Shown: positions 6,001 through 64,000 of the stretch, piece after piece
How the letters are laid out: the number at the start of each line of letters is the position of its first letter
Position numbering within the stretch: position 1 is the stretch's first letter
NCBI GenBank assembly: GCA_964035545.1
Contig: OZ037772.1
Span: 7,486,889-7,550,888 of the forward strand
Direction of reading: 5' to 3'
DNA length: 64,000 bases
Origin: Bugula neritina
Taxonomy: Eukaryota; Animalia; Bryozoa
Notes under the pieces: generated by a model
Databases searched by the model: none
What the model saw: the letters and a program-made list of their open reading frames with translations, nothing else
What the model was told of the DNA's origin: nothing
Made by a program: the position numbers and the translations under genes

Positions 6001-9000
6001 AGCAATAACACTTTGAAATGGAGTTGATTGTGAGAGTTCCTAAAAGAATGTTTGTATGAAATGGAAATCAAAGTAGACCCAAATACCTGCCTATAGATGT
6101 ATTCAAGTCTACTGTTTGTCTAATAAAGTGAGCTCAAAAGAAATAATCAATAATTCTGGGCAATTTTCAATACTGTTATATATGAACAGCTCATTGAGCC
6201 TATAATCGCGAGGATTACGTCAAAATCTTAGCCTAATTTCTAAAACAAACAAGTGCTAACTTATTTTTAGCTTCTGGTGAGCCCAAATATATTTTAAACT
6301 CAATTTTCACATTAGTATAATGGAATTTCATAAGAAAAATGGATATTGGTGATATTAAAGAGCAAATGTCCTATAAAAACAGTATGTACTGTAGGTTCAA
6401 TTATTATTCTTTTTACTTCACTTCAACTAGAAAAAAACTTTAGTTCAAATCAACAATTTCCCAACTTTCAACGAAGAATTACCACTTAAGATCCAAAAAT
6501 CTAATTAATGACATCTACATGTTGAATCCCATTCAAATCAGAATGGCTAGATGCAGCACAAATGTCCAAGTCATTGAGTGTAGTCTTTTTTGTCTGAACT
6601 CCAAGCCTTAGCTCAAAACTTGAAGTTCACCCCAAAAACACAACAGTGACTACAAACTTTGTGCTAATTCTACATCAGCTCCGAGTTAGGATTGACTAAG
6701 TGCAGTAGCTGACAATTCTCGAGTTTGGAGTTAGGGGTTTAAATTCCCAACTCCAACTCCAAACTCGAGAACCTCCAACAACTACCATCAGCCACCCTCG
6801 ACTCGGAGTTGCTTGGAAAATTTCTAACAAAAGTGTGAAAATTCGCTAAGTTACGAGTGAGATACTCACGCAGGGTCCCCACAAGAGTACCCAGCTGGAC
6901 ATGGATCACATCTATCTTGAGCTAGATTGGGCACAGTGCCAGTTTCGCATTGAGTGCAGCTTTTAGTACCCTCTTCTGCATAGTATCCATCAGGGCACCT
7001 GACAGCACTGTCATAACTGACACAGTCATGACCAGCAGGGCATGGGCTGCAGGTGCTTGACCCTGAATACCAAATCATCTACACTTATACACTTATACAA
7101 CTAACATGCCAGCAAACAATTTCTTAAAAGACCATCACTGCAACAAGCAGATAAAAAGCTTTCTAGAAACTTCTCTAACCTGCTGAGTCTGTATATTCTC
7201 CATCAGGGCACCTGCTACAGTTTGCCTGCTGCAGAGCACTATAGTAGCCCGGTTGACATTGGGTGACAAGTGATGGTGGAAGACAGCTGGAGCCGGCCGG
7301 GCAATCGTCACAAGATGTCTGCCCTTCCTGGGTGGCGTATTGCCCGTCTGCGCAGACGACGGGCTCTGTGTCGGTAGAAGGACAGTACATGCCGGCGGGA
7401 CAGGAAGTACAGTTATTAGCACCTTGGAGAGAGTACTGACCGGAGCCGCACGCCACCGGTACAGATGTACCGGCAACGTCTGCACAGCTGTATCCTGCCG
7501 GGCACGGGTCACATCCTATGGAACCAGCGGAGCTACTGTATGTACCTTGAGCACACACCTGCCAAATGTAGACATCAGAGACTTAACAGTACATCAAACG
7601 TAGAAATCATTTAATTGTGAATATGAAGTCATAAAGTAGTAGTTTAATAGAGAGACATTTTAGGACACATAGCATCGAGAGTAAAGGTTATTACTAATCA
7701 GCATAGCAAGTGGAAACAACTGCAGACACTATTGGAGTGAGTGGAGAGAAAAGTCAATAGTCACACTCATCACTAGAATAGCAGTTGAGAATTCACTTAC
7801 TAGCTAGGAGTTAAGAGTGGAGAATAATTGTCACGAAAAAAGTTGAGCAAAAACTCATGGTTACTAGTTGAGAGTCACTTTAGTTGAGAGTCACAACACA
7901 CAGTTATTGGAGAGTTACTAATAAAGTGAAGAGTTACAAAAGTTGATTTTCAGTTGAGTCCGGCTGCCAGCTACAAACCTGGCAAGCAGAAGAGCTACTC
8001 TCTCCATTTCCTGAGCCATACTGACCAGCTGGACACGGGTTGGGGGCTGCCGCTCCTCCCTCACAACTACAAGAATCCCATAAAATCAAGGGCTAAATAT
8101 TGTATTCTAAGAGAACTCAGCTAGAGTTAGATAAAATCCAGAATAACATCCCTCTATTTTATGTGAGTTTTCAAACTATAAAAAATAAAGTTGGAATTCA
8201 TGAAAAATATACAGTAATTCCAAGTTAACACCTGTAAGCTAAGAGTAAACATGATAAACAAAGTGTTTAATCAAGTTATGCTAATGCAAACAAGGAACCA
8301 TAGAGAGTAAATCTACAAGTGATTGCATTAAGAGAATAGGCCAATTCTACTCCTCATAGAAATTGATCACAAGCAACAATACCCTGTATTTATCTATTGC
8401 TTGGATACACTGTAAACTATGAATATATAATCTGTAGAGTGCAGCTACACCTAGAATATAGTCATAGTGTAACAGTGAGTATGTTTAACAGACTTGGTTT
8501 CAAGTGAGGAAACTTTTAGATTCCTACAAATTCATCAGTTAACAAATATTTGCTTGAATTGATATATCTTCAGCAGTTTGTGTTTGCCTGTTTTATGCAT
8601 CAACAAAATACGCAGAAAAAAACAATATAAATGCAAAGGAAGTGAGCTATAGCCTATAGAGAGACATCTAGTTGCACCCTATTTTTCACATTGAATTTAT
8701 GCCTATTGGTTTAAGACAAGTGTGATATTTTTGTGGGTTGAATAGAACTAGTGCCTGAACATAATCTTTGTTAGAGAGAACAAGATGTGTTGTACAGTTG
8801 AAGCAATCTTTATTGAGTAGAATAATATAATATTAAAGGTCCTCTGCCAGTGAGCTCCAGTAGTAGACTGAACTACACTGGAGCTCGCTGGCTTTTATAT
8901 ACAGCAAGAGATAGGGTTTTTCCTTTGTTGCCGAGATCGGAGGTCCGAAACGCCGACCTTCGGCATTTTGGAAGTCCGAAACGCCGAATTTCAGCACTTC

Positions 9001-11334: not shown

Positions 11335-13117
11335 ATGGAGAAGTTCAAAGAACAATTGCTGCTTGATAAAGAGCCTGCTGGAGATGACAACGCACTTTTA
11401 GAGGAATTCATGAGACTTTATGGTGGCTCTAGCTCAGCCCCAGAAGCCGAAAGTCAAAATCAAAATGAAAATCTAAAATTTAAAGTTGTCGAGCCGCATG
11501 CTGGGTTTTGTATAAAAACTAAATCTCAAGATGGAAATGGAAGTACAAGTAAAGTGTTTTTAAACATTTGCACCGCAGATCACATTCCATCACCTCAAGA
11601 AATCACTGATGAAGAACTAGCTGATATCCTGAGTTGCGAAGATCCCTCTAAATTCCGCGTTCCCATGAGTTTAGGAGAGCCTCACGCCGAAGTAGATAAG
11701 TCAGGCAATGGATGCATAGTATATGACATTGTTATTAGTCAAAAGTTTTTCAACAAAATCTCATCCAACAACTTATTCATGGGCTTTTTCATGTCCGTAG
11801 TATTTGAAGGTTTAGACAACAAGTATGATGTTAAGCTAAGTTCAGATTGGATCAAGTTGAAAAACAAAAAGCAAATGGGGAAAATTATGACTCAGCATAT
11901 TCGTACAGAGAGCAAGCCATGGATCGTAGAAATGGATGCAAACTCATCACCCAGTGCTCAATCAGTGGGGTAAGCATCACATCTTTCAGTTTTCTTTTGG
12001 TTAGATTATGACATACGATTTTTCATCATCCTTTAATACTAATAGCCTATATTATGTTGCACTCTGTTCTAAAACAAATTTGCTCTCATATTAGACAGCA
12101 TTTTTATACAAAACCATTTAATGTCACTCTTGGTTATGATTTTTTATCATGCATATCACATAGTATTTTGTTTACATTATTAACTCAAGGTTGCTATATT
12201 TGCAGGCCATTAATCTCGGAGGTGAAAGATACTGTCAAAGCTAAATCAGTTGAGCCCAAGTATAAGATTGTTCAGGAGCCAACTACTGGACACCCTGACT
12301 ATTTGATTGCCGAGGTGACAAATGTTCTCGTGTTGTTATTGGTTGAAGGTTGTAGGATGTATTTATGGTTGTTGTGTGATATTGTAATGGGTTATGCAGT
12401 CTAATAATATGAAATTACTCTCTCTCCCTTGTGGGGAATACTAATAGACACTAAATGTTATCCAATGAGAAGAACAGGAAGGCGAGCTTCCTGTCCAGTG
12501 ACAATTCCCGGGTTAATTAGCAATTATCACGTTGTTGTGAGCGAGGACTCGTAGTGTAAACACGTATTAGTAGGTGACTAATGTCAGCAGTAAATTGATG
12601 TAATGTTTGTATTGTGTTTTATTGTGGATAATAAAAGTTATTACTCGACAGCTACCCTAGTAATTACTAGTTAACGCCAGCACTGAATACCTCAGATAAA
12701 TCCACGCATAACTATTGTGTAACCCACAACAATATTATATAACCAAAATCTAAGGTAACTAGATTTTTGAATCAAAAATTAAATAAATCAGTATGTTATA
12801 TCTTAATTACTCTAATAAATCACAGTGGTTAATATGTAGGAGGTCTCTTCAGGCTCTTTGTGTTGTTCAGTCACTGGCTCTCAGTCTATATAATTATGTG
12901 TTTACAGATAGATCTGCCTGAGATAAGGAGTAGTAAAGCCATCACATTGGACATAGGAGAGGACTGTATTGTACTAAACACCAGGTCTCTGCTCTACTCA
13001 CTACATATCTACCTTCCTTACAGCTTTGTTCAGACAGAGTGTGGTGCACAGTTTGATAAACAGTCTAAGAAACTCTCCATAACTTTACCTGTTGTCCCTC
13101 AGCAGGCAGTATCATGA
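11335..13117 (+). CDS. PIH1D1: PIH1 domain-containing protein 1-like (R2TP co-chaperone subunit), ~317 aa. Exons 11335-11969, 12206-12314, 12908-13117
   Basis: PIH1 motifs PHAGFCIKT, KVFLNIC and FRVPMSLGEPHAEVDKSGNGCIVYDIVI, plus a C-terminal CS-like domain (AQFDKQSKKLSITLPV). GT-AG introns in phase 2 and phase 0. Confidence 0.88.
12383..12731 (+). mobile_element. Probable solo LTR in intron 2 of PIH1D1
   Basis: Imperfect terminal inverted repeat TGTAATGGGTTA...TAACCCACAACA, flanked by ATAT on both sides, with an internal AATAAA. Confidence 0.6.
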
Positions 13118-15765: not shown

Positions 15766-17129
15766 TTATAGATATTTATTACTTGGTAACATGTATTTTA
15801 AATAACTATACCTAAACGAATTAATTCACTACTCGGTTATAGTGTTAGGATGAGGATATTAAATGTAAAGAAATAGCTGTTTTACAATACTTCTATCTAG
15901 TATCTATCTAGCCAGAGAATACACCATGTAAAACTCAGCCAATCGGGGGTGTGTACCAACTCTAAAATCTCACCAGAATAACTTTTTTAAACTCCTACAA
16001 GTTAAAGCACCGAAATGCATGCTTTCAAAAACTAACTGTGAAAGTATTATTGCCTTTCGTTATTTCATTTTTTTTCATTTTATTTTATTTCATGTCTCAA
16101 GCTTTCGTGTCTTGAGTTCATTTTTCATAGTGTTTAAATCAAGTGTTGATAATGCAATCAAAAATTACATGTCTACAAAAGTGCCCTGGTACAGTTTTAC
16201 CACAGCTTCAGCGTGCTAGTATTTTAGAGCAGTAGAAAGAGCATAGCGCAGCTATTGAGCTGTAATGACAGTGGCACACTGTATTCAGTAGTAGTATGTT
16301 AGTCATATACATTACATGATAGCATTAGCCTTGTGGTCCTTTGTATGTAGAGCTACCACACTTACGACACAGTCACCCTTCTTCTTTCTACCAAGCATAA
16401 TAGTTGCAGTGATAAAAGCTTTTTCATGATTTAGTTTTAAATCAGCAGGTACTGCTGAGTACATTTTCCTAGTCTGAATATTTTATGTGCTTGCTTTAAT
16501 AAGATAACTTAAAAAATTGTTTTACACACAACTGCAAATGCATTAACCTATATTGCTTAGCATAAAGTAGTTGATTTATGTACCAACCATTATTTTATCC
16601 TAATTTTTTACTATAGCAGTGTTTTAAAACTTTGGTATATTTGTTTGTAGTGCACGGTGTGTGAATCCATATCTTTAGTTGGTATCATCAAAATAGTACC
16701 ATGTGTAGTGGAAATATATTTATTACATTAGAGTAATCTTTTTATGTATTGTATTTTATTTTTATTTTGAAATTTAATGTAATGTGATTATGTTTTTCGA
16801 TCCTGTCCGATTGTCGGTACAAGTGCTGATTGTCGGGCTCTGACATCGGACCACGGTACTGATGCCGGAGTCCGATTGTCGGAAGTTGCTGATTGTCGGG
16901 CTCCGACAATCAGACAGGATGAGAACAAAAAACTTTTCTTGTATAAAATGAGGTAAGCTCGCAGTGTAGAGTCAGTCTACTACTAGAGCTCGCTGGATCA
17001 AGACTACTTTTACCAGGTATAAATAATACAATAAAGGTTCATCTACTCAAGCTTGTTACCACTTCTTGTTCTTTATACTGGAGCTATGTTTCCCACTTAG
17101 ACTGCATTCTACCCACAAAACTACTAAAT

Positions 17130-17144
17130 TGGTGGCAGCGGTGG
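17130..17144 (+). promoter_or_regulatory. Primer-binding site complementary to the tRNA-Leu 3' end
   Basis: TGGTGGCAGCGGTGG just after the 5' LTR is the complement of ...CCACCGCTGCCA-CCA. Confidence 0.8.
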
Positions 17145-17189
17145 AATCCAGAATAGTTAAGTGGCCTACTGAAAGGATAGAAGATCAAG

Positions 17190-20100
17190 ATGGCCAAAGG
17201 GGAGAGAGAGGACCAGTCGCTGAAGTGCCAACAAGACCAGCCCTTACATTGGAGGCTCTGGTGGCGGCCCTCCGAGAGGTCCAAGGGGCTGGACAGGCGC
17301 TACCTGTTGAAAGTGCCGCCTCAAGCCCCCGACCTTCTGATCAGACAGCGATATGGAGCAATTTATCTGGAAGTTTAAGTATGTGGCCACCATTGCTGAA
17401 TGGCCAGCACTAGTGCGCGTCCTGTAACTTTGAGCCCGATGAAGCCCACATAATACGAGCTCTCCGAAACTCGTTTTGGTTTGACAACCCAAGAAGCCAG
17501 GGACAAGCTGCAAGGGCTAAGAAAAAATTGGAGGATGTTCTTACAAGACCATGGCAACTGGATTAAGAGGCTGGCCTAAACTGCTTTCAGTCAGGCCAAC
17601 GAAGACAAGAAGAGACGCCTGATATATAATGCGTCTTTTAGAACTATTAAAAACTCAGGACTACAACGCTACTGATTGGCGGCCTAGTTAAGTACTATTA
17701 AGGAGGCCCTGAAGAAGAGCAAGGCCCATTATCAGGTTGATGGACCCCATGGGCCTGACTTTGCCGCCCACCAGGTAGCCAAAGAAAAAAAGGAGACCAT
17801 CCCACTCCCTACTCTGATCATAGCGGCAGCTACCACAAAGTCGCCAGAGCATACACAGCTCACCATGTTGATGGACATGGTGAAGGACCTGCAGGCTACG
17901 GTGACAGAGCTGCAACGCAACCAAGCCAACAGGCGGGCTCCACAATTGCGGGATGATCCTGTCCGCCCTCCACACCTAACCTGCTAAACATGTGGTGCGT
18001 ACGGACATGTGAAAAGGCAATGCCCTAGGGGAAGATGAGTGCCTTTAAACAGCTGAGGCTCACGGTAACTTCCACCCTGAGCGCCTGAGCCCCAAGCCAG
18101 TCCCATTTGGGGAAGGCTTAGAGGACACGCAGGAGGACCTCTAAAGAGCCTGCTGATGCTGAGTGGCAGGCACATCAAAGACCTCTGACACCGCAAGGTC
18201 TGCCCGATCATCCGGCCTGGCCGCTCTGTAACCGATTCGCAGGGTTGCCCGAAGAGGTTGTGAAAGAAGATTCAGCTTACTCGCAAGAGTATCTCAAGCT
18301 ATTTTCTCAACTTCAGAAAACCCCTGGTGTCTGCAAAACAAAGAGGAGGCCTGTTGTGCAGACCCAAGTAGTGTCTCCCCCAGAGACTAACTGCTCCAGG
18401 AGCACCCAGCCGTACGGAAGCAGCTATTTCCTGCACAGAAAAATTTTGATTAGAGCTGCCACATTCTGACTGAACACTGGGTGCACCACCAACCCGCTGA
18501 GTCAGCGTCTTTTCGACACTCTTGGTTACCGTTAGCGTGCGAGCCTCGCGCCGTTTGAAGGTGCACATAGTACGTTGGTGGACAAATCATGTATTTTTTT
18601 GCTACGGCATCGTCACACTACTTGGATGTGTCCGTGATCAGGTGATTCACAAAATGCTCATAGTCAACCAGCTAAAGGAGGTCGTCATCTTAGGGGTGTA
18701 ATTTCTGAAGAAACACCAGTGTCACATGAATTACCAGAAGTCGACGGTGGTGATGGCTGGGAACGAACTTGTCTGTGTTGACAAGTTTGGCAGGCCCTTG
18801 GTGGACAAAGTCCAGGCAGTGCGGGACTGCACGGTTCCTGGGAGATTCCATACAACTCTCCGCTGCAGGGTCAACTGCAAGGAGATTGCAGGTCTAAAGT
18901 GGTGGAAGGAGCGCACAAAGTAATTCGACTGGCAAACAGCCTAAATCGGCTAGACTGTCAGAGAGAGCTTCTCGTGCAGGGTATCAACCCCTTCACCGAA
19001 CCAGTCTGATTATTAGCTGGGGCGCTGGTGGAGAAGTACCACTCCATCTAGGAAGCGGATGTGGGGCAGGCGCTAGAAACAGTAGCCAACATCCAGTGAA
19101 ACTCTCCTTGTACCAGTCGAGAAGCAGTCCCGGAGCACTTGGCTGACCTCTATGGTAGAACTTTTGACAACTGTACAAATAGTACTGAACGCCAAGTACT
19201 GGCTCAACTACTCATAGAGTACAGTGATGTCTTCAGTTGCGGAGATGGAGACATGGAGCTGATTAAGGTTATCTCCCATGAGATACCCTTGGCAGCCAGC
19301 ACAGCCCCTATCAGGTAGCCAACCCGATGTTTAGGCCCGGAGAAGGAGGTGAGCCGACAAGTACAGAATCTTCTCGTCTGGGACCTGATTGAGCCTGCCT
19401 ACGGTGCGTGGAGCTCTCCAGTAGTCCAAGTCGAGAAAAAGGATAGTAGCTGGAGGTTCTGTGTGGACTACCGCCAACTCAACAGTGTTACCATCCAGGA
19501 TGCCCGCCCTTTCCCACAGACAGATTAGTCGCCGGATGCCCTTGCGAGCAGTAAGTACTTTTGTACATTGGATCTGCTTAGCAGGTATTGGCAAGTGCCC
19601 CTTAGTCCTGATGCCCAAGACAGAGCAGAATTCATCACCGGTGATGGGCTCTGAAAATGGAAAGTGCTGTCATTCAGTCTTACATCCGCCCCGGCAACTT
19701 TCCAGCAACTCATGAAACATGTCCTCAATGGATTACACTTGAAGACCCTGGCAATCTAACTGGATGATGTCATTGGTATCTCCCTGACTTTACGATTCAT
19801 GTCAGTCGTCTGCGAGAGGTCTTTGAGCGCCCCCGGGCAGCTGAACTGAAGTTTAAGCTTTCCAAGTGTGCACTCCTGCAGCTGGAAGTCATTGACCTGG
19901 GCCATGAAGTTGCTCGTGATAGAGTTGCTACCAACACGGAGAAGGTGCAAGCTGTGAATGAGTGGACTGTTCCCCAAGACCTTCCTGAGTTGCGGGCATT
20001 GGTGAGCCTGGTAAAGCACTATCGGCAGTACATGCCTGGGTTTGCAAGGGTGGCTCAGCCTTTGAATCAGCTAACTGCCAAGGGAGTCCGGTGGCAATGG

Positions 20101-20300
20101 ATACAGGAGGAGTAGCAGACATTTGAGTTTTTCAAGCAACAGCTAATGGAGGCGTCAATCCTGTCGTATCCTGATCCATCCAGAGAGTGCATCCTGGACA
20201 TCGACGCCAGCAACCATAGCGTGAGAGCTGTTTTGTCCCAATTCCAGGGTGGAAGTGAGGTGGTTGTAGCTTACTACAGCAAGAACCTCGCGACCGCCGG
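17190..20300 (+). pseudogene. Disrupted Gypsy gag-pol
   Basis: CCHC knuckle C*TCGAYGHVKRQC (~17980-18025), protease-like LNTGCTT (~18470), RT motifs WRFCVDYRQLN and I*LDDVI (19754-19774), RNase H start ILDIDASNHSVRAVLSQ...YYSK. Confidence 0.88.
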
Positions 20301-20732
20301 TCAGTCAGTCAGGTATTTGTTTAGGGCTAGATCCTCTAGTATCGGAGTCTAGCCCAACTTTTACTAGTTGGCCTGCACTAGACTCACCCGAAACTGCCCT
20401 GTTTGAGACTATCAATATGGATTTCGGAGAAGATTCACTCCACGATTACCTGTTAGATCAGGACGTGAGGTCAGTTTTTCTCTAGAATTATTGCAATTCC
20501 CAGTCTCTAGCAGGGTACCCAACAAACAGGTACCGAATTTCGGCAACAGTGAGACAGGCCAGTCACGGCCTCTACTGTTGTAGGGACTGATGTGGAGAGG
20601 AAGGATGCTGGGACGAGTTGTATCAACTCCTTTCCTGTCCAGGCCCTTTGTTCGGCTCTTAGCAGTCTGAAGGGTGCCACTCAAATATCTGAGGTGCTAC
20701 CCACCACCGCTAGTATACCTGTCTCCTAGCCC

Positions 20733-21500
20733 ATGGAGCTCCATCTATCCGCGGGGGACCAGCAGGTGATCCTGCACCTTGAGCGTTTTGAAGAATACTC
20801 ATCAGGTGTGTTGGCTCTACCTCAGGCCCTGTTCGCCCGCCAACACTGGACCACCAAAGAAACTAATCTCCAGATACGCGGAGCTTGCAGCGAGATGGGC
20901 AACCGTGCATGTCATCAGTGCCGGAAGAAGTTCTCTTCCACACGTCAGCTGCGTGTACACACCCCGCAGCACTTGGTAAGCGTATTCTGTTCATGTGACA
21001 AATGCTCTTATTAGCGCGACTGTGTGCTGTGCCATCAGCACATAGCTCGCTGCCACATAGGTCATACGTTCGTGGTCGATGAGACCATGTTTCCGAAGTT
21101 CAGGGACTTGATTCTGCCACACCTCAAGGACCCCCATAAATGACAGCTTTTGCTTTTGGTTTCCTGGCGCATTGGCCCTTGAGAGAGGAGGACCTTGAAC
21201 CGGCCGCTGCATCCCAACCACCAGCTACCCAGCCTTTTTGGGTCCTGCTGGCACGGGTCGCCAAAGTCCACTGCTATAGGCCTGGACCCTCGACCCGCAG
21301 CGGCGAATAAGAAGAAGAGGGACCAGCATACTCGTGTAGCCTGAATCTCTCAGTCTACCCAGGACCACCGACCGATCTGCCCACTGGAAGATGAGGTTCG
21401 GCACCTGTGCCACCATATGCGGCGATATGAAGAAGAGATGCGGCCTTCTGAAAGCAGCTTAGCCGTCTAGAGCACCCTGATGGAGGCCGCCGACACTTAT
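20733..21500 (+). pseudogene. Decayed accessory ORF of the Gypsy element encoding a C2H2 zinc finger
   Basis: CHQCRKKFSSTRQLRVHTPQH is a C-x2-C-x12-H-x3-H finger. A second finger-like segment continues through a stop (FCSCDKCSY*RDCVLCHQHIARCH). Confidence 0.65.
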
Positions 21501-23904: not shown

Positions 23905-26900
23905 ATGAAGAAAATCAAAATGGATTACAATGCAAAAACTCTACACAAGGCTGAAAGCAGAGAAGAAGCTAAACTGCTGCTTGAATCAGTGCCACCAGAA
24001 AAAAGGAGAGACTTATTACTATCTGTCGATGACAAGCAATGTACAGCTCTACATGTCCAAACCAGTAATGGTAAAGCAGATGTAGTTGAATATTTATGTC
24101 ATTCATTCAATACCAATAATGAACTCTTGCTAGCAAAAGATTTAAATGGAAAAATAGCTCTACATTATGCAAAAACCAAAAAAATAGCTGAACTACTTGT
24201 AAAAGCAGTCCCTCTGAAAAAACATAGGGATTTTATATTATCTGCTGATACAAATCAGTGTACAGCATTACATGTAGCTGCCGTCAATGGCGAAAGAGAC
24301 GTTGTGGACTATCTCTGTAGTTTACCAATAACAGAGGAACTAGTGTTTGCAAAATGTAACAAAGGCAAGACAGCCCTTCATTATTCTTCTAACCACAAAA
24401 TTGCACAAACACTTGTAGAGTCAATCACACCTGACAAAAAAAGGGATTTTATATTATCAGTTACTAATAATCAGAGCACAGCATTACATTATGCTGCCAT
24501 TGAGGGTAAAACAGATGTAGTAGAATATCTCTGTAGTTTACCGGAGAAAGATGAGCTAGTGTTAGCAAGAAATGACAAAGGCTGGACGGCCCTTCATTAT
24601 TCTCCAAACCACAAAATTGCTCAAACACTTGTAGAGTCAATCACACTCGACAAAAGAAAGGATTTTATATTATCAGTTGCTGATCATCAGCTTACAGCAT
24701 TACATGTAGCTGCTAGCAATGGTAGAACAGATGTAGTAGAGTATCTCTGCGGTTTACCAGAAAAAGATGAGCTAGTGTTAGCAAAAAGCATTGAAGGCTG
24801 GACAGCCCTTCATTATTCTTCAAACCACAAAATTGCTCAAACACTTGTAGAGTCAATCACACTCGACAAAAGAAGGGATTTTATATTAACAGTTTCTGTT
24901 AATCAGCTTACAGCATTACATGTAGCTGCTAGCAGTGGTAGAACAGATGTTGTAGAATATCTCTGCGGTTTACCAGAAAATGATGAGCTGGTGTTAGCAA
25001 GAGATGACAAAGGCAAGACAGCCCTTCATTATTCTTTCAACCACAAAATTGCTCAAACACTTATAGAGTCAGTCACCCCTGAGAAAAAAAAGGATTTTAT
25101 ATTATCAGTTTCTGTTAATCAGCTTACAGCATTACATGTAGCTGCCAACAACCGTAAAATAGACGTTGTGGAATATCTGTGTAGTTTACCAATAACAGAG
25201 GAACTGGTTTTTGCAAGAACTAACGAAGGCTGGACAGCCCTTCATTATTCTTCCAACCACGAAATTGCTCAAACACTTATAGAGTCAATCACACTTGACA
25301 AAAGAAGGGATTTTACATTATCAGTTACTGATGATCAGTTCACAGCATTACATGTAGCTGCTGGCAATGGTAGAACAGATGTAGTAGAATATCTCTGCGG
25401 TTTACCAGAAAATGATGAGCTGGTGTTAGCAAGAGATGACATAGGCTGGACAGCCCTTCATTGTTCTTCAAACCACAAAATTGCTCAAACACTTGTACAG
25501 TCAGTCGCAGCTGACAAAAGAAGGGATTTTATATTATCAGTTACTGATGATCAGCTCACAGCATTACATGTAGCTGCTGGCAATGGTAGAACAGATGTAG
25601 TAGAATATCTTTGTAGTTTACCAGAAAAAGATGAGCTAGTGTTAGCAAAAAACATTGAAGGCTGCACAGCCCTTCATTATTCTTCAAACCACAAAATTGC
25701 TCAAACACTTGTAGAGTCAGCCACAGCTGACAAAAAAAAGGATTTTATATTAACAGTTACTGAGAATCAGTGCACAGCATTACATTATGCTGCTGACAAA
25801 AGCAAAACAGATGTAGTAGAATATCTCTGTAGTTTACCAGAGAAAGATGAGCTGGTGTTAGCAAAGAGTAACAAAGGCAGGACAGCCCTTCATTATTCTT
25901 CAAATCAGAAAATTGCTCAAACACTTGTAGAGTCAATCACACTCGACAAAAGAAAGGATCTTATATTATCAGTTAGTGATTATCAGCTCACAGCATTACA
26001 TGTAGCTGCCATCGATGGTAAAATAGACGTTGTGGAATATCTCTGTAGTTTACCAGAAAAAGATGAGCTAGTGTTAGCAAAAAATAGCAAAGGCTGCACT
26101 GCCCTTCATTGTTCGTCAAATAAGAAGATTGCTCACAAACTTGTAGAGTCAGTCACACTTGATGACAAAAGAAGGGATTTTATATTATCAGTTACTGAGA
26201 ATCAGTTCACAGCATTACATGTAGCTGCTGACAAAGGCAAAACAGATGTAGTAGAATATCTCTGTAGTTTACCAGAGAAAGATGAGCTGGTGTTAGCAAG
26301 AGATGACATAGGCAGGACAGCCCTTCATCTTTCTTCAAACCACAAAACTGCTCAAACACTTATTGAGTCAATCACATTTGACAAAAGAAGGGATTTTATA
26401 TTATCAGTTACTGATGATCAGTGTACAGCATTACATATAGCTGCTAGCAATGGTAGAACAGATGTTGTGGATTATCTCTGTAGTTTACCAGAAAAAGATG
26501 AGCTGATGTTAGCAAGAAATGACAAAGGCAGGACAGCCCTTCATTATTCTTCAAATCAGAAAATAGCCCAATTGCTTGTAGAGTCCTTAAAAACAGAAAA
26601 ACAGAGATACTTTGTATACATGGTAAACAATTATAAATCTACTGCTTTGCATGTAGCTGCTGAGGAGGGTAAAGTTGATGTAGTAGAATATCTCTGTAGT
26701 CTATATCCAAACAACAATGAACTGATACTAAAAAAAGATGCTGATGGTAATACTGCATTGCATGTTTCTAAAAATCGAGAAATCGCTAGAATACTTTTAG
26801 AATCTGTCACAAAAGTTCAGCAAGCTCGCTTTCTTTTGACTAGTAATAGATATCAGCAGACAGCATTACATGAAGCCGCACGCTCACGTAGAAATGACGT

Positions 26901-29900
26901 AGTAGAATATCTTTGTGAGTTATGCCCAACTGATGAGTTATTTCTCAATAAAGACAGCTCTGGCAAAACTGCTTTATGCTACATTGAAGACAGGAATACA
27001 GCTGAACTGCTAATTAGATCAGCAACAGAAGATGGAAGGGCTAAACTGCTATCAGCTGTTGACAGAAATGAACAAACATTGTTGCACCAGGCTGCTAAAT
27101 TCGGTAGAACTAATGTAATTGAGTATATTTATAGCTTATTAGGTAATGTGGAGCTGTTCTTGAAGAAAGACATTTTTGGCAGAACAGCACTACACTATTC
27201 TAAAAATAAACATGTAGCCAAAGCTCTGTTAGAAAAAGTCCCTTCAAAACATCAAAAAGAGTTTATTTTATCAGTTGACAATAGTGGGCGGACAGCACTG
27301 CATGCAGCAGCAGTCACTGATAAAGCTTTTGAAGTACTCGAATACTTTTGCGAATTACACATAGCAGACGACAAAATGCTAATACAAAAAGACAGAAATG
27401 GCGAAACTGTTTTACACTACGCGGCCAACAAACAAATTGCCAAGTTGCTCATAGATTCAGTTTCACCAGAGAGAAAAGCGGAATTTCTATTCTCTATGAA
27501 TGCTGATCAAGGCACAGTGTTGCATAAGGCTGCTTCATCTTTCCGAACTGATGTTGTCATGTTCCTTTGCAGTTTACCATTACTTGACAATGAATTTATA
27601 TTTCTGGCAAACAAATTTGGTCATACCGCTTTGCATTATACTAAAAATAAAGAATCAGCGAAAGCGATTGTGGATTCGGTTACACCACCAGCAAGACAGA
27701 GAGACCTACTTCTTTTACAAGATAAAAACAAATCTACAGTATTGCATCACGCAGCTACAGACTGGTATGAACAAGATCTAGTGGAATATTTTTGCAGCAT
27801 ATCATTGGCAAAAGACGAGCTGATATGTGCTCAAAATTCTAATGGCCAAACGGCATTGCATTTTGTGTATGACTCACAGATGGTCAAATCTATTGTTTTT
27901 CATCTACACCCTGAAAAGTTACCGTTACTGCTAATGAGTGAAGATAACACAGGAAACACACCTATTCTCTCATTAGCATTCTCAGGAAATGTTAATGCTT
28001 TGAAAGTTCTTCTTAAGCATATTGATGATCAGTGTGAGCCAGAAATAATGTCACTATGCTTACAAAAACACAACAAACTGAAACAGAACATTTTACACCT
28101 TGCAGCTTTGTCACCATATCTTGACCAGCTCTATGATGTTTTGATAGAATATTTATACTGTGTAGATATAAGCAGCATGATGTATCCTGATGTTTATGGT
28201 AATACCCCATTGCACTATATTGCTGCCAAGTATAGCACCAAAATATTTGCTGACTTTATGTTGCACCTTCCTTTGACATTGAGAAAGAATGTCCTGACTT
28301 GTCCAAACAAGCAGAAAACTACATGTCACTCAATCATTGCTAGATCTCGTTTTGATACTAGATACTATGTTGATAAGGTTCTAGGAGGTGATGCAGCAAG
28401 TTTAGCAGAAACAGGCAATGCTACATCTTTATTCGGCATATTTGCAGCTATATCAAAACGCCTCGTTTGCCCTGTCCCATACGCATATAATGAGGATATT
28501 TTCAAAGTATTGCAGCATACTCTAAATCAATACCTACTGCCATGCATCTCTGTAAATGATGAAACAGCTAAACTGTTACCTGCAGCTGCTACTGCAAGAA
28601 TTAAACCAGAAAGATGCCTTCAAAAACAAGGAAAAGTAAGTTATCTGAAACATTTTCAACAATTTTCTCACCAATTATTTTTTGACCGTCACTGATTAAA
28701 CTTATAGTTTGCATAGTTACCATACAGTTTTAAAAACAACTTCAACAGCTGCTGTTGATATCAAACGACAATCGTGTAGATAGTTATGTGAAACTATGTT
28801 ATACAAACTCCAGCTTATATTTTTAGCATCTGTTCAACCTACAACATATGTTTTTTTCAGTAAACATTTTTCAAAAGCTTCTTGAAAAACTAAACTCGCA
28901 CTAAATATTGTCCAATTGTGTTTACATCTCTTTATTTAAGTGCTGAGAGTATATAATTTCTTCAAATAGACTTTTCTAATCAAGGATTTTTGCTATAGTT
29001 GGTAAAATACAATTTTGAACAGTTGTGCTAATTAAAATTGTTTGAAAATTACTTTTCAACCTGATTTTGTGATATGTTAAGTTATCAAAAACAATTGTGA
29101 TATAGAAAAACTGTAGGATGTCAAAAACTAGCCAGTTTTAATTATATTGCTGAAAAGTTTTAAACTTCTTACATTAGACTTTGAAATTGTGTTCTATATT
29201 TATCATCACCATCATGAAACATTCATTAAAACTATAAATTATACTGGACTCTGATAGAAATCAAGTGATGCACAAGACTACTCGTTGATAGTGGTAAGCT
29301 CAACTGATGTGGAAGGGCCAAAACAAGATGTGGTACAGCATAGACTCAGTGACATGGATTACTCTGAATACCATGGCAAACCTAAGGTATCATGTCTATT
29401 TGTCCAACCAAAGGATATATAAATGTATCTTTCAATTTCAATGTATTTGTATTGGTTATCTTACCCAGTATGCAGTTAACACTATAACTTACAAGTTTGC
29501 TTTGATGCAAATTGGAATTACATGGTAAATTTTGTAATGTAAAGAGCTAAAGATTGGGTGATTTTTGTTTTTTATACATAGATAGCAGTTATACAAAGTT
29601 CTGCAATGGAACCAAATCTGAACTTGATACCACCAGGTCCTGATTATCTGATACTCTCAGTGAAATATAACACAGCTGAATACACAAGGTAATGCTATAA
29701 ACTATTAATTAACCCATAAAGTGATTGACTGGATGTGTTTTAACTTTAGTTTACATGTTTTTTTATACAACAAACTTTCAAGAACTTTTTTGCTCAGGAA
29801 TCCGGTACAAGATGTCGAAAAACACAACTCTATTCAATCATTTATTTCTGAGCTCAGCTGTTGTCCTGATGTACAGAAAGTGAATGTAAACTCAACTCTG

Positions 29901-31731
29901 AACAAGATATACATCAGAGGAAAAAATAAGTGTCTTGCAGATGGTTGTAAAGTGGGTTATAAACCAATTGATGATCCAATGCAAGCTGAATCTAATGAGA
30001 AAAAGTCCAAAGCATTGATAATTTGCAATCAATTTAAAATCAGAGATGGAATGACTCCAGAAAACCTACAAACAACAAAGTCTCGCAAGACTACCTTAAA
30101 AATGGCCCAGACAGTATTTGAAGATTATTGGGACTTTGAGGTAATGACCTTCTAATGACATATGTTATTTATCATAATCAAAGCATGCATAATTGAAAAT
30201 ATGTTAATCTAAATTGTACTTATTAGTAATAATCCAAATACGAATGCTGATCAAAATTTCAACTTTCCATAATTCTCAGATAATGCTATAACTATGGAGC
30301 TCAAACAAGTTAACACATAACTATCTTTGTACATAAAGGCTAATTGTGGTATATGAGTGCAAGTTACAATTATTAAATCAGTTACCAGATAATGTTGTTA
30401 GTGAACCATATTATTCTTTAAACTTCTTTAAATTAGGTAGAAGTCAAGTATGATCTCTCTGCAGAAGAAATACTCAGTTCTATATCTGAGTTCTCCAGAT
30501 CAGAAGGACATGGTTCAATGGCTGCTTTGACTATCCTCTCCCATGGATATCAAAGAAACATAATGGGAGCTGATAACCAATCAGTGTGTTCTGTACAGGA
30601 AGTAGTCGACTCATTCAACACAGGAAATGTTGAGAATATAAAAAAGGTTTGAGAAAACTCATTTTAATTACACAGCAGTTGCGTATATTGGCGTCAAATA
30701 TTGATTATATTTCCATCATGCCGTCAAAAATAAATTTCTCAATGAAATAATATTTTTCTGATACACTTTCACTCTTTATATTGTAGTTACTATTTCTGTC
30801 TTACTGCCGAGGAGGTATTCCCACTCAGTTTAATCGTGCTCAACACAGCTTTGAGTCTGGTTCTGGTTTTCCATGGCCAGAGCGAGGGCCTTCAGAGCCA
30901 AATTATCAACCACTCAAAAAGTTTCTAGATGAGTCGTTTAGAAAGCAGGAATGGTACAGTCTACCAACTTTCCCACCATTGGAAGTTCCTGTAGACTGTT
31001 ACATTATGTTCTCCACTCTACCAGACAGCAAGTATGTAGCATCAGAACTGATTTTCAGTATTGAATTGATCTAAATTTGCGTCAAAAGAAATTCAAATTG
31101 CTTCGGCCCTGCACATAATATGCTATAGCAAATTTTCAGCAAAGTGCCTTACTTTACTTTTCGTAACCCATAAACAGCTCACAAGACTGTTTATAGATGT
31201 CTTCAAACAAAATCACAGCTATAGATTCAATTGTTTTGATTAGAAAAGGTACTCTTTTCTTCCCATAAAAAACCCAGTATTTGAAAATAAATAAACTTTT
31301 ACAATAGTTTTTCATGTGAATCAAAATATATTGTTGTGGGCATAGTAATTAATAATTAGTTAAACTGGGTACCCGATGTTTCATAGTCCCACTGCCTGTA
31401 ACATATTCCATCGTGATTTTACAGGTCAAAGCCAGGACTGATGTTCAAGTGTTTGTCAGAACATCTGAGAGATCTGACCAGTGATTACAGAAGTAAACTA
31501 TTGACACCTGCTACCAGCTCTTCTGATGACATCACAGAACAAGCAGACAGAAAACCGTCAAAAGAAAAGCCAGTAATGAGAGTAAACCTACTTGATTTAC
31601 TCACAGATGTAGCTGGAATAATGAGAGATACGTCCAGATCTACACAATATGCTAACTTATGTTATACTGTTGATAGAAACAGTCAACAGATCTTTATTGA
31701 CATCTTTAAGCCCAGCTCTGAGTCAAAATAA
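23905..31731 (+). CDS. Ankyrin-repeat / pseudo-caspase / caspase (peptidase C14-like) protein, paralogue 1, ~2020 aa. Exons 23905 (or 23920)-28635, 29258-29386, 29582-29688, 29798-30140, 30437-30646, 30787-31031, 31425-31731
   Basis: GT-AG splicing in phases 0,0,2,0,0,2 gives an uninterrupted frame. 18 double-ANK units, then caspase motifs KALIICNQF, LTILSHG (His 30542-30544), LFLSYCRG (Cys 30805-30807), DCYIMFSTLP and LLDLLTDV. Confidence 0.88.
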
Positions 31732-40412: not shown

Positions 40413-42302
<1,890 letters not shown>

Positions 42303-45300
42303 TCACAGTCGCTTGTACAATCCGTTGCATCTGAAAAACAGAAAATATTTCTGTTGTCAGTTAGTATGCTAAAGTCTACATCGTTACACATGGCAGCTTG
42401 CAAGGGTAGAACAGATGTAGTAGAATATCTCTGTAGTTTACCAGTGAAAGAGGAGTTGGTATTAGCAAAAAGTGACACAGGCCGCACAGCCCTTCATTAT
42501 TCTCCAAATCAGAAAATTGCTCAACTACTACTAGAGTCAATTTCACTTGACAAAAGAAGAGATTTTATATTATCAGTTGCTGATAGTCAACTCACAGCAT
42601 TACATGTAGCTGCTAGCAACGGTAGAACAGAAGTGGTGGAATATTTTTGTAGTTTACCAGCAGAAGATGAACTCCTGTTAGCAATAGATCAGGATGGCTG
42701 CACAGCCCTTCATTATTCCTCAAATCAGAAAATAGCCCAACTGCTTGTAGAGTCGCTGAAATCGGAAAAACAGAGATACTTTGTATATATGGTAAACAAT
42801 AATAAATCTACTGCTCTGCATGTAGCTGCTACCGAGGGTAAGGCTGATGTAGTAGAGTATCTCTGTAGTTTATATCCAAACAATGATGAGTGGATACTAA
42901 AGAAAGATAATAATGGTAATACTGCATTGCATGTTTCTGCAAATAGAGAAATTGTAAAAACACTTTTGGGATCTGTCAAAAAAGAGCTGAAATCAAGTCT
43001 GTTTTTGGCTAGAAACAACTTCCAACAAACAGCACTGCACACCGCTTCAATTTCCAACAAAACTGATGTACTAGAATGTCTTTGTAAATTTGAAAATATT
43101 GGTGAGTTACTTCTCATAAAAGATTGGACTAGCAGAACTGCCTTATACTACATTTACAGCAGATATGCAGCTGAAATTTTGGTTAATTCAGCAACAGAAG
43201 ACGTAAGGTCTAAGTTATTATCAGCTGTTGACAGAGATGGACAAACAGTATTGCACAGAGCTGCTAAATTCAGTCGAACTGATGTAATAGAATATTTCTG
43301 CAGTTTATTTAGTGACGATGAGGTGATGCTCAAAAAAGACATGTTTGGTAAAACAGCTTTACACTATGCAAAGAATAAGCAAGTTGCTAAAAATCTTCTC
43401 ACATGTGTCACTTCAATAAACCAGAAAGACTTTATATTGTCTTCTGACAAATTAGGATCAACAGCATTGCATACAGCTGTAGCCACTAGTCAAACCTCTG
43501 ATCTGGTGAAATACTTTTGTCAATTAAGCTTGGCTGATGATCAATTGTTTCTGCATAAAGACATACACGGAAAATCAGTTTTGCATTGTGCTATTAATAG
43601 CAACGTTGCAAAAATGCTCATAGAGTCAGTTGCACCGAAGAAGCAAAAGAGCTTCCTTTTTTCTCTTGATATAAATCAGCGCACAGCATTGCACTATGCT
43701 GCTATATGGTTTCGAACAGATGTTGTCAAGTTCTTCTGCAGTTTACCCTTGGTTGATGATGAATTTATATTTTTTAAAGACAAAATTGGGCAAACAGCTT
43801 TACATTATGCTCAAAACAAAGAGTCAGCAGAAGCTATTGTAGAATCAGTTACATCATCAAGACAGAGATATCTTCTCTTTTCACAAAATGGAAACAAATG
43901 GACAGCATTGCATTCTGCAGCCTTAAATCCATTTGGAGCAGATGTAACAGAGTATCTTTGCAAAATATCAGTAGGAAATTATGAGCTGATATCCGCTCAA
44001 AATTCGTATGGTCAAACAGCATTGCATATTGCTTGGAGCGCAAATGCAGTGAGATCCATTCTCTTTTCTCTACAAACTGAACAGTTACCTTTTCTGCTCA
44101 TGAGTGAGGATAATGCAGGAAACACACCTCTTCTTTCATTAACACTTTTAGGAAATTATAATCCCTTAGAACAAATCCTGGAGCATATTGAAGATCAGTG
44201 TGGATCAGAAGTAATGCCATCATGCTTACAGAAACAAAACAAACTCAAACAAAACATTTTACATCTTGCAGCTTTGTCGCCACGCCTTGACAAAATATAT
44301 GATGTTTTGATGAAATATTTACACAATGAGGATATAGTGAGCATGATGTATCCTGATGTACGTGGTAACACACCAATTCATTATGTTGCTGCCAAATACA
44401 ACATCAGAGTGTTTGCTGACTTTATGCTACACCTTACTTTGCCAATGAGACATTTTGTGGTAAATCATTCAAATAAGCTGCAAACAACATGCTTGTCAAT
44501 AATTGCTAGATCATCTTTTGATACAAAATATTATGTTGACAACATTCTTGGGCCACCTACAAGCAAAACAGCATTATCAGCTCCTGAGATAGCACCATTG
44601 GTTTTTGCTTCATCAATTTCTAGCATTTTGTACAGAATGTTTCCATATTCATACAATCAAAATGTGTTCAAAGTATTAAGCCATGCTCTTAATCAATACC
44701 CAATATCAGACAGTTGTTTGATTACATCGCTTGATCTGAACAATGAAACAGGAAAAAGTTTGCTGGAAAAAGAAAAAGTATGTGATTTCCTTTGGTTTTT
44801 CTTTCAGTTTCATTTAATACCACCATGACTAAATTGTTTTGTGAAAACAACTCTCACGTTTTGTTTTATTCCTATCTTCAAACTAAACTGGAATGCTTGA
44901 AATTTTACGTGATGTATTCAAAATTTTAAAGTTGAAAGTTGAGCAAAACACTATTACTTTACATTGCCTTTTTTATTTATAAATGTTAGAGATCTAAAAT
45001 AATTATACTGTATTTGTATTAGGAATCGAATAAAGGTCAGGACTACTTGTTAATGATCGTTAACACAGTTGATGCTGAAGGGCCAATACAAGATACTGTG
45101 CAGAACAAACTCAATGGTATGGACACCCTTGAGTATCATGGCAAACCAAAGGTATAACCACTTTGTTATATGTGACTGCAAAAAGATAATACATTTTTGT
45201 TGTTTAATTTGATAGTATAAAACTGAAATGTACAACTGACTGATCGAATTTATGTTAAGTTGTCATTGTGATCAAATTAAAAGTTGCAAAACTCCTTTTT

Positions 45301-48300
45301 AAGGATCTGCACCGTATTTTTATAAATAGTTCACCATAGTAAACTGACTGGTCAAAAACTTAAGAGTGTGCAGTGAAAAAACGCTAAACTTCAGAGCAAA
45401 CTGACTTTTAGTTAACTTCACTTTCAACTTTAAGTTTACAATAAAAACATTTTTATTTCCATCAAAATACTTTATTACTCATCATCACCACAGAATAAAT
45501 GTTCATTGAAGTATAACACCATTTTTGTATTATAATTATTTACATATATTAGTGGTTTTATGGATGAATGAGTCCTAAATCTGAGTTAGGCCCACTATAC
45601 ATTTCAGCTACAATGCAATTGCTTTGCTGCAAACATTGTATTTGTATTTGAAGGATGCATATTGTTGTAAATTGCAAAGGTGCTGTTGAAGCTAAATTCT
45701 AGAAGATTTTGTTCAGCTGGCACTGTTTCATTTATAGATAGCAGTGATACAGAGTTCTGTACCAGAACCAGATCTGAATCTAATACCACCAGATCCTGAC
45801 TACCTGATCCTCACTGTGAAGTATCATACAGACAGTTATGAGAGGTAAGTTTATAAATATAACATTCCGATTTTTTTGTTTTGAGTATACATTTATATTA
45901 TTTATACAAAGTAGTTTATATTATGTGATTTCTTTGTATGTATCTTTCACAAACACCTAACAGAAATCCAGCAATAGACATGTCAAAATACAAAGAGACT
46001 AGCCATCTGATTACCGAGCTGAGCTGCGGTCCTGATGTACAGAGAGTGAGTGTAAACTCAACTCTGAACAAGAGATACACCAGAGATGATGAGGAGAGAG
46101 AAACAGATGATGACGAAGACAATTATGACTCAATAGAAAATGGAAAGAAAGTTGAGCTTAAAGAAAAAAAGTCTAAAGTACTAATTATTTGCAATCAATT
46201 TGAAATCAAATATGGAATGAATCAGCAAAACTTACAGACAACCAAGTTTCGAAGAAACACATTAAAGAAAGCACACGCAGTATTCAAAGAATTTTGGAAT
46301 TTCGAGGTAATTACTTTTTAATGATATTATTAATGTATGGTGTAATATTTGTAGATTATTCACGTTACATTAGCATCATGTGAATACTTTTGCTAATTTA
46401 TGTACATACATTAAAACTTAAACTCTCAAATTCAATATTTTACGGCTTAAATGTATTATTTTAGTGCATAGAGTGGTTACTTTTGACCTAAATATAGAGT
46501 CAAGTTACAACTTTTATTTGTCAATGGTAAATATTATAGATCCTGCGAGTGATTTTGTTTAATCATGTACCTAATTAACACACAAACTATCTGGTAAAAA
46601 GATGTTTCTGAACAAACTAACTTGGTTTTATCAGGTAGAAGTCAAGTATGATCTCTCTGCAGAAGAAATGCTAAGTTCTATATCTGAGTTCTCCAGATCA
46701 GAAGGACATGGTTCAATGGCTGCTTTGACTATCCTATCTCATGGATATCAGAGAAACATAATGGGAGCTGATAACCAATCACTGTGTTCTGTACAGGAAG
46801 TAGTTGATTCATTCAACACAGGAAATGTTCAGAATATAAAAAAGGTTTATACATTGTGGTATTACCTAAACAGTGAATTGTGGCATCAAAGCATTTTAAA
46901 CGCATGAGTTGCTTTATTTTTGGTATCTAATAATGAATTTTGTTTAAGACTAAATCACAATTTATATTAGACTTATAATTTTTGTTTTTAAACTTGTCTA
47001 AGTAATATCCAAATGTTTATGTTACACTTTTATTGCTTATATTGTAGCTATTATTTCTGTCTTACTGCCGCGGAAGTATTCTCCCTCAGTACAACAGAAC
47101 TCCACACAGCTTTGAATCAAGTTCTGATTTCCCATGGCCAGAAAATGAGGTGTCAGTAATGTATCAACCTGTAAGGAAGGGTTTTAATGAGACTTTAAGA
47201 AGGCAGGAATGGAGCAGACAACCAACATTCCAACCATTAGATGTTCCTGTAGATTGCTATATTTTGTTTTCTACTTTACCAGACAGCAAGTATGTATAAT
47301 TTGAACTGGGCACGAGTATCAACTAATCATATTGAATTTCAATATTTTAGTTATACCGTAGAGCTTCTAGACATGTAACTAGAGCAATGCTTCAGCAAAG
47401 CTATTCAATTCACCATTCTGAACCTAAAATTTCAAGTGACTTCAAACAAAGTGCTCAACATAACATTGAGTGCACGGTGTCTTTCATTTAGGTTTCTTAA
47501 AATTCACAAAAAAAACGTCAATTTAAGTAAATAAAATATCGCAGATCATTGCCCATATAGTATTCCTATAGTAGGCTTTATAGCAAAGGTTACATAAATT
47601 CTCAGTAACATTTCTGTAATGCACTCTGCACAAATCTTCCATGCAGGTCGAAGCCAGGACTGATGTTCAAATGTCTGTCAGAACATCTGAGAGATCTGAC
47701 CAGTGATTACAGAAGTAAACTATTGACACCTGCTACCAGCTCTTCTGATGACATCACAAAACAAACAGACAGACAGATGTTAACAGATGATTCTGTGTTA
47801 TCAGACGAAAGAAAAGACAAGCCGGTAATGAGAGTAAACCTACTTGACTTACTCACAGATGTAGCTGGAATAATGAGAGATACGTCCAGATCTACACAAT
47901 ATGCTAACTTATGTTATACTGTTGATAGAAACAGTCAACAGATTTTTATTGACATATTTAAGCCCAACTCTGAGTCTGAATAGCATTCTTACACAAGTCA
48001 AACTTACATATTCTGTCTCCTAGTAACACTTTTTTGAGATATATGAAAGTGATAGTATATATGTGATAGTGACGCTGATTAACTGATAGTGGTACCCATA
48101 TATAAGTTGGAGTGATACTCTAACAATCAACTAATAGTAATGGTTCTTTCTATATATTAACACTCTCTGTGTTAATATAGTGACAGTCTTTGAGTCCCAG
48201 AGACACATTCATTACAGGACTTTAATATCGTGCGTCATTGATATGCATACAATATAACCTATAGTAAAACTAGTTTAGAATATATATTACTATGTTATAT

Positions 48301-57207: not shown

Positions 57208-64000
<6,793 letters not shown>

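Follow-up and report, generated by a model that had tools for sequence, protein, structure and literature searches.

Three tandem genes in a 64,000-nucleotide stretch of the genome of the bryozoan Bugula neritina (the window; contig OZ037772.1 of assembly GCA_964035545.1, positions 7,486,889 to 7,550,888 of the forward strand) each open with a very long ankyrin exon and end in caspase exons, in otherwise AT-rich animal DNA. Between the ankyrin arm and the active caspase lies a segment of about 115 residues, made of exons 2 and 3 and the start of exon 4, which an earlier note had read from the letters alone as a second, catalytically dead caspase-like module, possibly acting as a built-in partner of the active domain. 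The locus raises the question of whether this module is a caspase copy and, if so, what such a copy does. Judged by sequence comparison, the observation itself is confirmed, in that a dead, truncated copy kept by selection is fused one to one in front of an intact caspase, and the interpretation placed on it is partly supported.

Gene A is predicted to be spliced from seven exons with GT-AG at every junction, giving a single open frame of 2018 residues, and genes B and C share its exon set and splice phases. Exon 1 of gene A is ankyrin only by Pfam, with no DED. The features are listed below in window coordinates.

23920-28635, plus strand: gene A exon 1, an ankyrin solenoid of 1572 residues with a conserved helix at its end (Pfam Ank_2, E 4e-153, 25 stretches; phase-0 GT donor)
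28492-28533, plus strand: conserved helix that closes exon 1, with the family pattern I.KVLKY.LNEYS, either an ankyrin cap or module α2 (conserved to Watersipora; helical in the AlphaFold model)
29258-29386, plus strand: gene A exon 2, with the β3-like strand, the α3-like helix and GKPK of the module and no His (alignment to exon 5, P 6.6e-4; z 2.5 against canonical caspases)
29582-29688, plus strand: gene A exon 3, with the β4-like strand (Cys to Ser), a 16-residue linker, IPPGPD and the β5-like strand (phase-2 end in an Arg codon; 20 genome copies)
29798-29920, plus strand: start of gene A exon 4, with a single helix and the β6-like strand V.V.STL.K.Y (STL invariant in the family alignment; 20 genome copies; fourth of 234 offsets at the caspase β6)
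29921-30140, plus strand: remainder of gene A exon 4, a tether of variable length followed by β1 and α1 of the active caspase (KALIICN at 30009-30029)
30437-30646, plus strand: gene A exon 5, active caspase with the catalytic His (SHG at 30539-30547; Pfam PF00656, E 2.9e-7; His invariant in 20/20)
30787-31031, plus strand: gene A exon 6, with the catalytic Cys (SYCRG at 30799-30813), a long conserved intersubunit linker and β5 (CRG invariant in 20/20; phase-2 end in a Lys/Arg codon)
31425-31731, plus strand: gene A exon 7, with α4, α5 and β6 of the active caspase and the stop codon (top rank on the caspase profile for its α5 and β6 blocks)
41826-47983, plus strand: paralogue B, whole gene, exon 1 at 41826-44777 (all junctions GT-AG, same phases)
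45023-46096, plus strand: module exons of paralogue B at 45023-45151, 45738-45844 and from 45964, with caspase exons continuing to 47983 (GT-AG, same phases)
57208-64000, plus strand: paralogue C, exon 1 at 57208-61449, its caspase exons running past the window end (continuation in locus L011)
62619-63794, plus strand: module exons of paralogue C at 62619-62747, 63455-63561 and from 63662

Anatomy of the module

The module retains counterparts of β3, α3, GKPK, β4, an IPP segment, β5, one helix and β6, and is without the His hairpin, β1/α1/β2 and one small-subunit helix. The tail of exon 1 gave no match to β1, α1, β2 or α2 of the caspase profile, and with only one helix between its β5 and β6 the module has neither a full large subunit nor both small-subunit helices. 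The shortened outline proposed earlier, with the C-terminal strand kept, agrees with this for β6 and for the absent β1/α1/β2; which small-subunit helix is missing is ambiguous, as the remaining one can be placed as either α4 or α5 in the block scan. The motifs that had been picked out lie where they were placed (DYSLIVVSS at 29276-29302, GKPK at 29375-29386, IAVIQ at 29582-29596, a twelve-residue motif at 29627-29662 and the NSTL strand at 29871-29915). The consensus drawn from them for all three paralogues is looser than it was written, gene B reading DYLLMIV, PPDPD and HLITEL and gene C SLISEF and KKVSV.

Both catalytic residues are gone from the module of most copies. None of 21 sequences has a His in the His column, and the Cys is lost in 20 of 22; the two paralogues that carry a Cys at the catalytic column (loci L021 and L027) have no His. 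The replacements QSSA, QSSV and QRYE had been read correctly for the three window genes. Retention of the Gln and of the Arg 15 residues after the small-subunit Asp, also proposed, is true of the window genes and their local subfamily, whereas distant paralogues and Watersipora have L, V, I or R instead. From the Gln column to the Asp, most module copies, including that of Watersipora, count 16 residues, compared to 65 in the active domain of gene A, and this short module linker would fit an uncleaved crossover between neighbouring parallel strands. The best-conserved residues of the module are those of its PP.P.D and STL segments, and the tether from the module to the active β1 is unconserved and ranges from 20 to 144 residues across the family.

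A structural model of the ankyrin tail together with exon 2 is confident only in the ankyrin part; it shows an α3-like helix, and the strand region has low confidence. The last helix of exon 1 was considered as the α2 of the module, a reading that the block scan does not support, with no significant match to caspase α2. The spacer between this helix and the module measures about 3 to 45 residues across the family.

Conservation of the module as coding sequence

Three profiles, built from exon 3, the beginning of exon 4 and the active exon 6, were run against the genome. Every one of them hits exactly 20 places, and these belong to the same 20 genes. Scanning the genome with the profiles yielded no module on its own and no caspase of the ankyrin family without a module. 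Furthermore, the module is under purifying selection: between paralogues, the ratio of non-synonymous to synonymous substitution (dN/dS) has a median of 0.31 in the module, as against 0.19 in the active exons. The 20 copies, the conserved splice phases and this ratio confirm, on the sequence data, that the module is coding sequence beyond chance.

A protein from another bryozoan, Watersipora subatra, is the sole named relative that turned up; its locus holds the module with the same two intron phases upstream of the RefSeq model. This model (XP_067930803.1, 263 residues) omits the ankyrin exon, the module and the caspase β1/α1, all of which are intact upstream (L041:6506-9306). The module hence escapes automatic annotation, as the RefSeq model begins downstream of it, and no entry holding the spliced module was found in protein database searches. 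A contig from another sample, counted as a third bryozoan, carries exons 3 and 4 of the module.

Several loci depart from the common layout. At one paralogue (L017:2900-3640) exons 3-7 are intact and exon 2 was not located in the stretch examined. The intron between exons 1 and 2 is missing in two distant paralogues and in Watersipora (L024, L027 and L041), and its absence from distant members suggests it was probably gained later. In three loci (L013:3100-4100, minus strand; L015:4450-4950; L039:8030-8520) a second round of duplication has copied exon 3 and the start of exon 4, the extra copy being a further decayed, small-subunit-like segment that shares the phase-2 junction and immediately precedes the active β1; exon duplication with preserved phases thus does occur in the family. 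Some paralogues are mosaic: between gene A and L012 the synonymous divergence (dS) is 0.12 in the module and 0.36 in the active exons, and between B and C it is 1.06 and 0.27, which suggests gene conversion or exon exchange.

The active domain

The domain downstream of the module is a caspase, scoring above the PF00656 cut-off with exon 5 of gene A (E 2.9e-7), with exons 4 and 5 of locus L025 (E 1.9e-8, profile positions 1-111) and with the Watersipora protein (E 6e-10, profile positions 51-212, spanning both subunits). The His-Cys dyad, in SHG and xxCRG, is invariant in all 20 aligned sequences, and the small subunit has both helices and a hydrophobic C-terminus, with a β6 that has diverged from the canonical pattern. 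A single-sequence AlphaFold prediction of this domain (P0022) reached a pLDDT of 37.

The Asp-specific S1 pocket (Arg179, Gln283, Arg341) is not found in this form, since the Gln column is Ser in nearly all sequences; at the codon that corresponds to Arg341, 13 of 15 have Arg or Lys, and Arg179 is not firmly placed. The substrate specificity of the active domain may, judging from these columns, differ from Asp. QACRG reads S[YCF]CRG in this family, with Ser for the Gln, and conservation is unusually high across the 65-residue linker between the subunits, where [FW]E[STC] is almost constant (30787-31031 in the window, and in the paralogues). Drosophila Dronc offers a parallel, as its QACRG Gln is also replaced, giving PFCRG (PMC2180229); by analogy, self-cleavage after Glu, and with it a Glu preference, may be possible in the bryozoan family. 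Dronc differs in carrying a CARD and in having no dead copy.

Origin of the module

In order to compare the module with caspases we built exon profiles and a canonical caspase profile, drew blocks for ungapped scans by hand, and placed the three active-exon profiles end to end as the target of a collinear chain test. The module exons align to the caspase profile in register: exon 2 ends with GKPK at column 115, exon 3 starts at column 116, and the alignment of the exon 4 start ends on the last strand. The z scores against this profile are 2.5 for exon 2, 1.6 for exon 3 and 1.2 for exon 4, with a sum of 3.0. As the true active exons 6 and 7 reach only 0.8 and 0.3 on the same test, it is weak even for real pieces of a caspase. 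In the ungapped scan, among about 235 offsets, the blocks ranked first for β3, GKPK, β4 and β5, third for α3 and fourth for β6. The ordered series β3, α3, GKPK, β4, β5, helix, β6 is thus present, with modest significance: the chain test was equalled by 1 of 1000 shuffles for the hand-drawn blocks and by 5-14 of 500 for blind blocks, the ankyrin-tail control was null, and permuting the block order gave 28 of 5040 for the hand-drawn set. In hhalign, exon 2 pairs with exon 5 (P 6.6e-4), both ending at the same splice site. Taken together, the resemblance of module to caspase appears only moderately beyond chance, with P about 0.001-0.03.

The introns provide a second line of evidence. Within the module, a phase-0 intron follows PK and a phase-2 intron lies in the Arg codon 15 residues past the small-subunit Asp; within the active domain, a phase-0 intron follows PK or KK and a phase-2 intron lies in the Arg/Lys codon after STLPDS. 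The match of the intron after GKPK to the one after IKK/IPK had been claimed and was confirmed, and the second had been missed. Both positions keep their phases in Watersipora. In eight other caspase genes, taken as a control from the hundreds in the genome, PK is not followed by an intron, and the Arg codon is uninterrupted wherever its exon was covered. The chance of both matches is about 1e-4 if intron sites are uniform.

Several observations weigh against a caspase origin. Both shared introns sit at proto-splice sites, which raises the chance of coincidence to 1.5-4%, and the second match requires a three-residue deletion in the active domain. Searched exon by exon, Pfam, the PDB sequences and the Atlas gave no caspase-like match for any module exon, hhalign returned nothing significant for exons 3 and 4, whether set against the active exons or the caspase alignment, and blind blocks give weak values when their order is permuted (P 0.025-0.17). 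On a rival reading, for which the blank library searches, the low z of the single exons (1.2-2.5) and the proto-splice sites speak, the module would be an unrelated small α/β domain that agrees with caspases in motifs and introns by accident. We regard this as unlikely, because the test lacks power, the true active exons 6 and 7 scoring lower still, and because the order of the motifs, the abutting ends and the two intron matches would all have to be accidental. Searched singly, the true active exons 6 and 7 likewise miss Pfam, and hhalign of the true active exons is likewise not significant. The profile similarity that had been expected of exons 2-4 is absent from the libraries exon by exon and appears in the collinear custom profiles, at z about 3. 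The module is very probably of caspase origin, and the more specific proposal that it arose by internal duplication of the gene's own caspase exons, which had been put forward from the sequence, is well supported, though not proven, by the ordered motif match, the two shared introns and the strict one-to-one linkage with the active domain.

A candidate partner fused to the active domain

In caspases, β6 and the L2' segment, the equivalents of STL and PP.P.D, form the dimer face. Since the most invariant residues of the module are those of its β6 and its L2'-equivalent segment, the leading proposal is that the module docks in cis on the dimer face of the active domain as a built-in partner, and we put its chances at about even. 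Even the shortest tether, at 20 residues, should leave room for this. In such a mechanism, an ancestral bryozoan ankyrin-caspase gene would have undergone a tandem duplication of its caspase exons, after which the upstream copy would have lost its catalytic face (the His, the Cys, the His hairpin, β1/α1/β2, the cleavable linker and one small-subunit helix) and kept a putative four-strand core, β3-β4-β5-β6. The β6 strand and the IPP segment of the module would dock on the dimer face of the downstream caspase in the same chain, and the one polypeptide would form a pseudo-dimer that has one active site, the arrangement modelled for caspase-16 and seen in cFLIP-L/caspase-8. Caspases are activated by dimerisation of their catalytic domains (PMC7586951, PMC12198278); here adaptor-driven dimerisation would be unneeded, consistent with the absence of a CARD or DED, and the ankyrin arm might, speculatively, gate activity or pick substrates. 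Against docking in cis stand the facts that the module retains half of a caspase and that the missing helix could belong to the dimer face; moreover, the conserved residues could simply be the folding core.

The same contact could instead be inhibitory, with the module capping the dimer face and preventing homodimerisation, a block that cutting of the tether or a movement of the ankyrin arm would lift. A truncated module may fail to order the active-site loops, cFLIP inhibits as well as activates (PMC7586951), and the tether is often acidic and exposed; yet no conserved cleavage site is evident in a tether that runs from 20 to 144 residues, and the diverged β6 of the active domain is what would be expected of a dedicated heterologous partner. 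We consider an inhibitory cap unlikely. Distinctly unlikely is pairing in trans, in which the module would bind the active domain of another chain and build head-to-tail dimers or chains, possibly between paralogues. The sevenfold variation in tether length leaves the geometry unconstrained, the paralogues are mosaic in their module and active parts, and intermolecular pairing has been raised for caspase-16 too (PMC12198278), but even tethers of 20-25 residues should permit docking in cis, which local concentration would favour.

That the module serves as a structural adaptor, capping the ankyrin solenoid and positioning the protease with its dimer face unused, strikes us as improbable. Half the fold is gone, and a single exon of Watersipora and of two paralogues runs from the last ankyrin-side helix into the module, whereas within exon 4 the β6-like STL strand is the element that varies least and the spacer between helix and module varies from about 3 to 45 residues. 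A reverse, circularly permuted caspase, in which the small-subunit half of the module completes the downstream large subunit, is highly improbable: the module does keep the canonical Arg at D+15 and STL.K where the active small subunit is altered, but that subunit retains both helices and its hydrophobic C-terminus, and the 16-residue linker ties the module β5 to its own β4.

Other caspases and neighbouring features

The genome measures 216 Mb and gives at least 181 Peptidase_C14 matches. Four other caspases with long open frames were checked as further tandem candidates, and none is tandem. At L033:2980-4014 (minus strand) lies a caspase-3-like gene that has no introns and lacks the catalytic Cys (DAS[FS]G). 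It is conserved in Watersipora and on other contigs, and its type appears by sequence to be a free-standing pseudo-caspase family. The caspase exons at L029-L032 are preceded by long COR-like frames, and some of these caspase exons have a CSG motif. Elsewhere in the window, inspection of the open reading frames by eye gave a putative cysteine-rich repeat gene (1796-7558, minus strand), a putative PIH1-like gene (11335-13117, plus strand), a GC-richer stretch resembling a decayed retroelement (17000-21000, putative) and two putative reverse-transcriptase-like remnants (40951-41394, minus strand; 52655-53530, plus strand).

Comparison with known systems

The concept of a built-in dead partner has precedent in caspase-16 (PMC12198278), separase and Csx29. 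The dead caspase-like prodomain of mammalian caspase-16 is a product of exon duplication; its splice phases are conserved and it lacks an intersubunit linker (PMC12198278, PMC12292325). Caspase-16 has been modelled like the caspase-14 dimer, and a FLIP-like intramolecular pairing has been proposed (PMC12198278). The bryozoan genes resemble it in carrying a dead N-terminal copy without His and Cys and an active C-terminal caspase in one open frame, in their apparent origin by exon duplication with conserved phases (here two shared introns), and in an absent or short linker in the dead copy beside a long one in the active domain (16 and 65 residues in gene A). In contrast to the caspase-16 prodomain of about 204 residues, modelled with a caspase fold, the bryozoan module has about 115 and is truncated, and it sits behind a large ankyrin arm in a 20-gene family of a different phylum. 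No orthology to caspase-16, a mammalian protein of the caspase-14-like clade, was found, as the relatives we traced are bryozoan or unassigned and the module has about 115 residues; the bryozoan case apparently arose independently.

The likeness to cFLIP-L, which with caspase-8 forms an active heterodimer with one active site (PMC7586951), lies in a pseudo-caspase partner and, as proposed for the bryozoan genes, a dimer with one active site. cFLIP differs in being a separate gene with tandem DEDs, full-length pseudo-catalytic subunits and a cleavable linker, whereas the bryozoan partner is fused, fixed at one to one, truncated and without a DED. Ankyrin prodomains are known in caspases of parasitic flatworms and of Alitta virens, where as here they replace the CARD or DED; the passages compared report no second caspase-like module, and the text of that study makes no mention of bryozoans (bioRxiv 10.1101/2023.12.11.571055). 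Separase and the TPR-CHAT protein Csx29 likewise join a helical solenoid to a pseudo-protease domain and, behind it, an active protease of clan CD, all within one polypeptide (PMC10003635; bioRxiv 10.1101/2022.08.17.504292), and the pseudo domain of Csx29, at about 128 residues, is close in size to the module. Their solenoids are TPR/HEAT and their proteases CHAT/separase, whereas the bryozoan genes are ankyrin and Peptidase_C14 by Pfam, so that the parallel is an analogy of architecture and the bryozoan family is not a member. The family is caspase-16-like in layout, but it is not a caspase-16, cFLIP or CHAT protein.

What is apparently new is the independent origin, the truncation, the ankyrin arm and the size of the family, and no description of a bryozoan ankyrin caspase or dead-copy family was found in the literature, our coverage of which is incomplete. 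A 2025 review knows of no caspase besides caspase-16 with a caspase-like prodomain, and it lists as open whether intramolecular pairing in caspase-16 suffices for activity without dimerisation (PMC12292325). The bryozoan family appears to be a second case with the caspase-16 signature, the dead copy coming first with a short linker and the active domain having a long one. Its 20 paralogues, tethers of 20-144 residues and bryozoan relatives are natural variants for this question of intramolecular pairing, and they would also reveal the half of a caspase that is required of a dimer partner. We tentatively raise the possibility, doubtful as it is, that these are monomeric, pre-dimerised caspases in which a 115-residue half-caspase is the activating partner, the ankyrin arm replaces all adaptors as sensor and switch, and cleavage follows Glu. 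If so, the module would be, to our knowledge, the smallest activating caspase partner, and the family would represent an animal one-chain sensor-protease converging on the layout of separase and Csx29.

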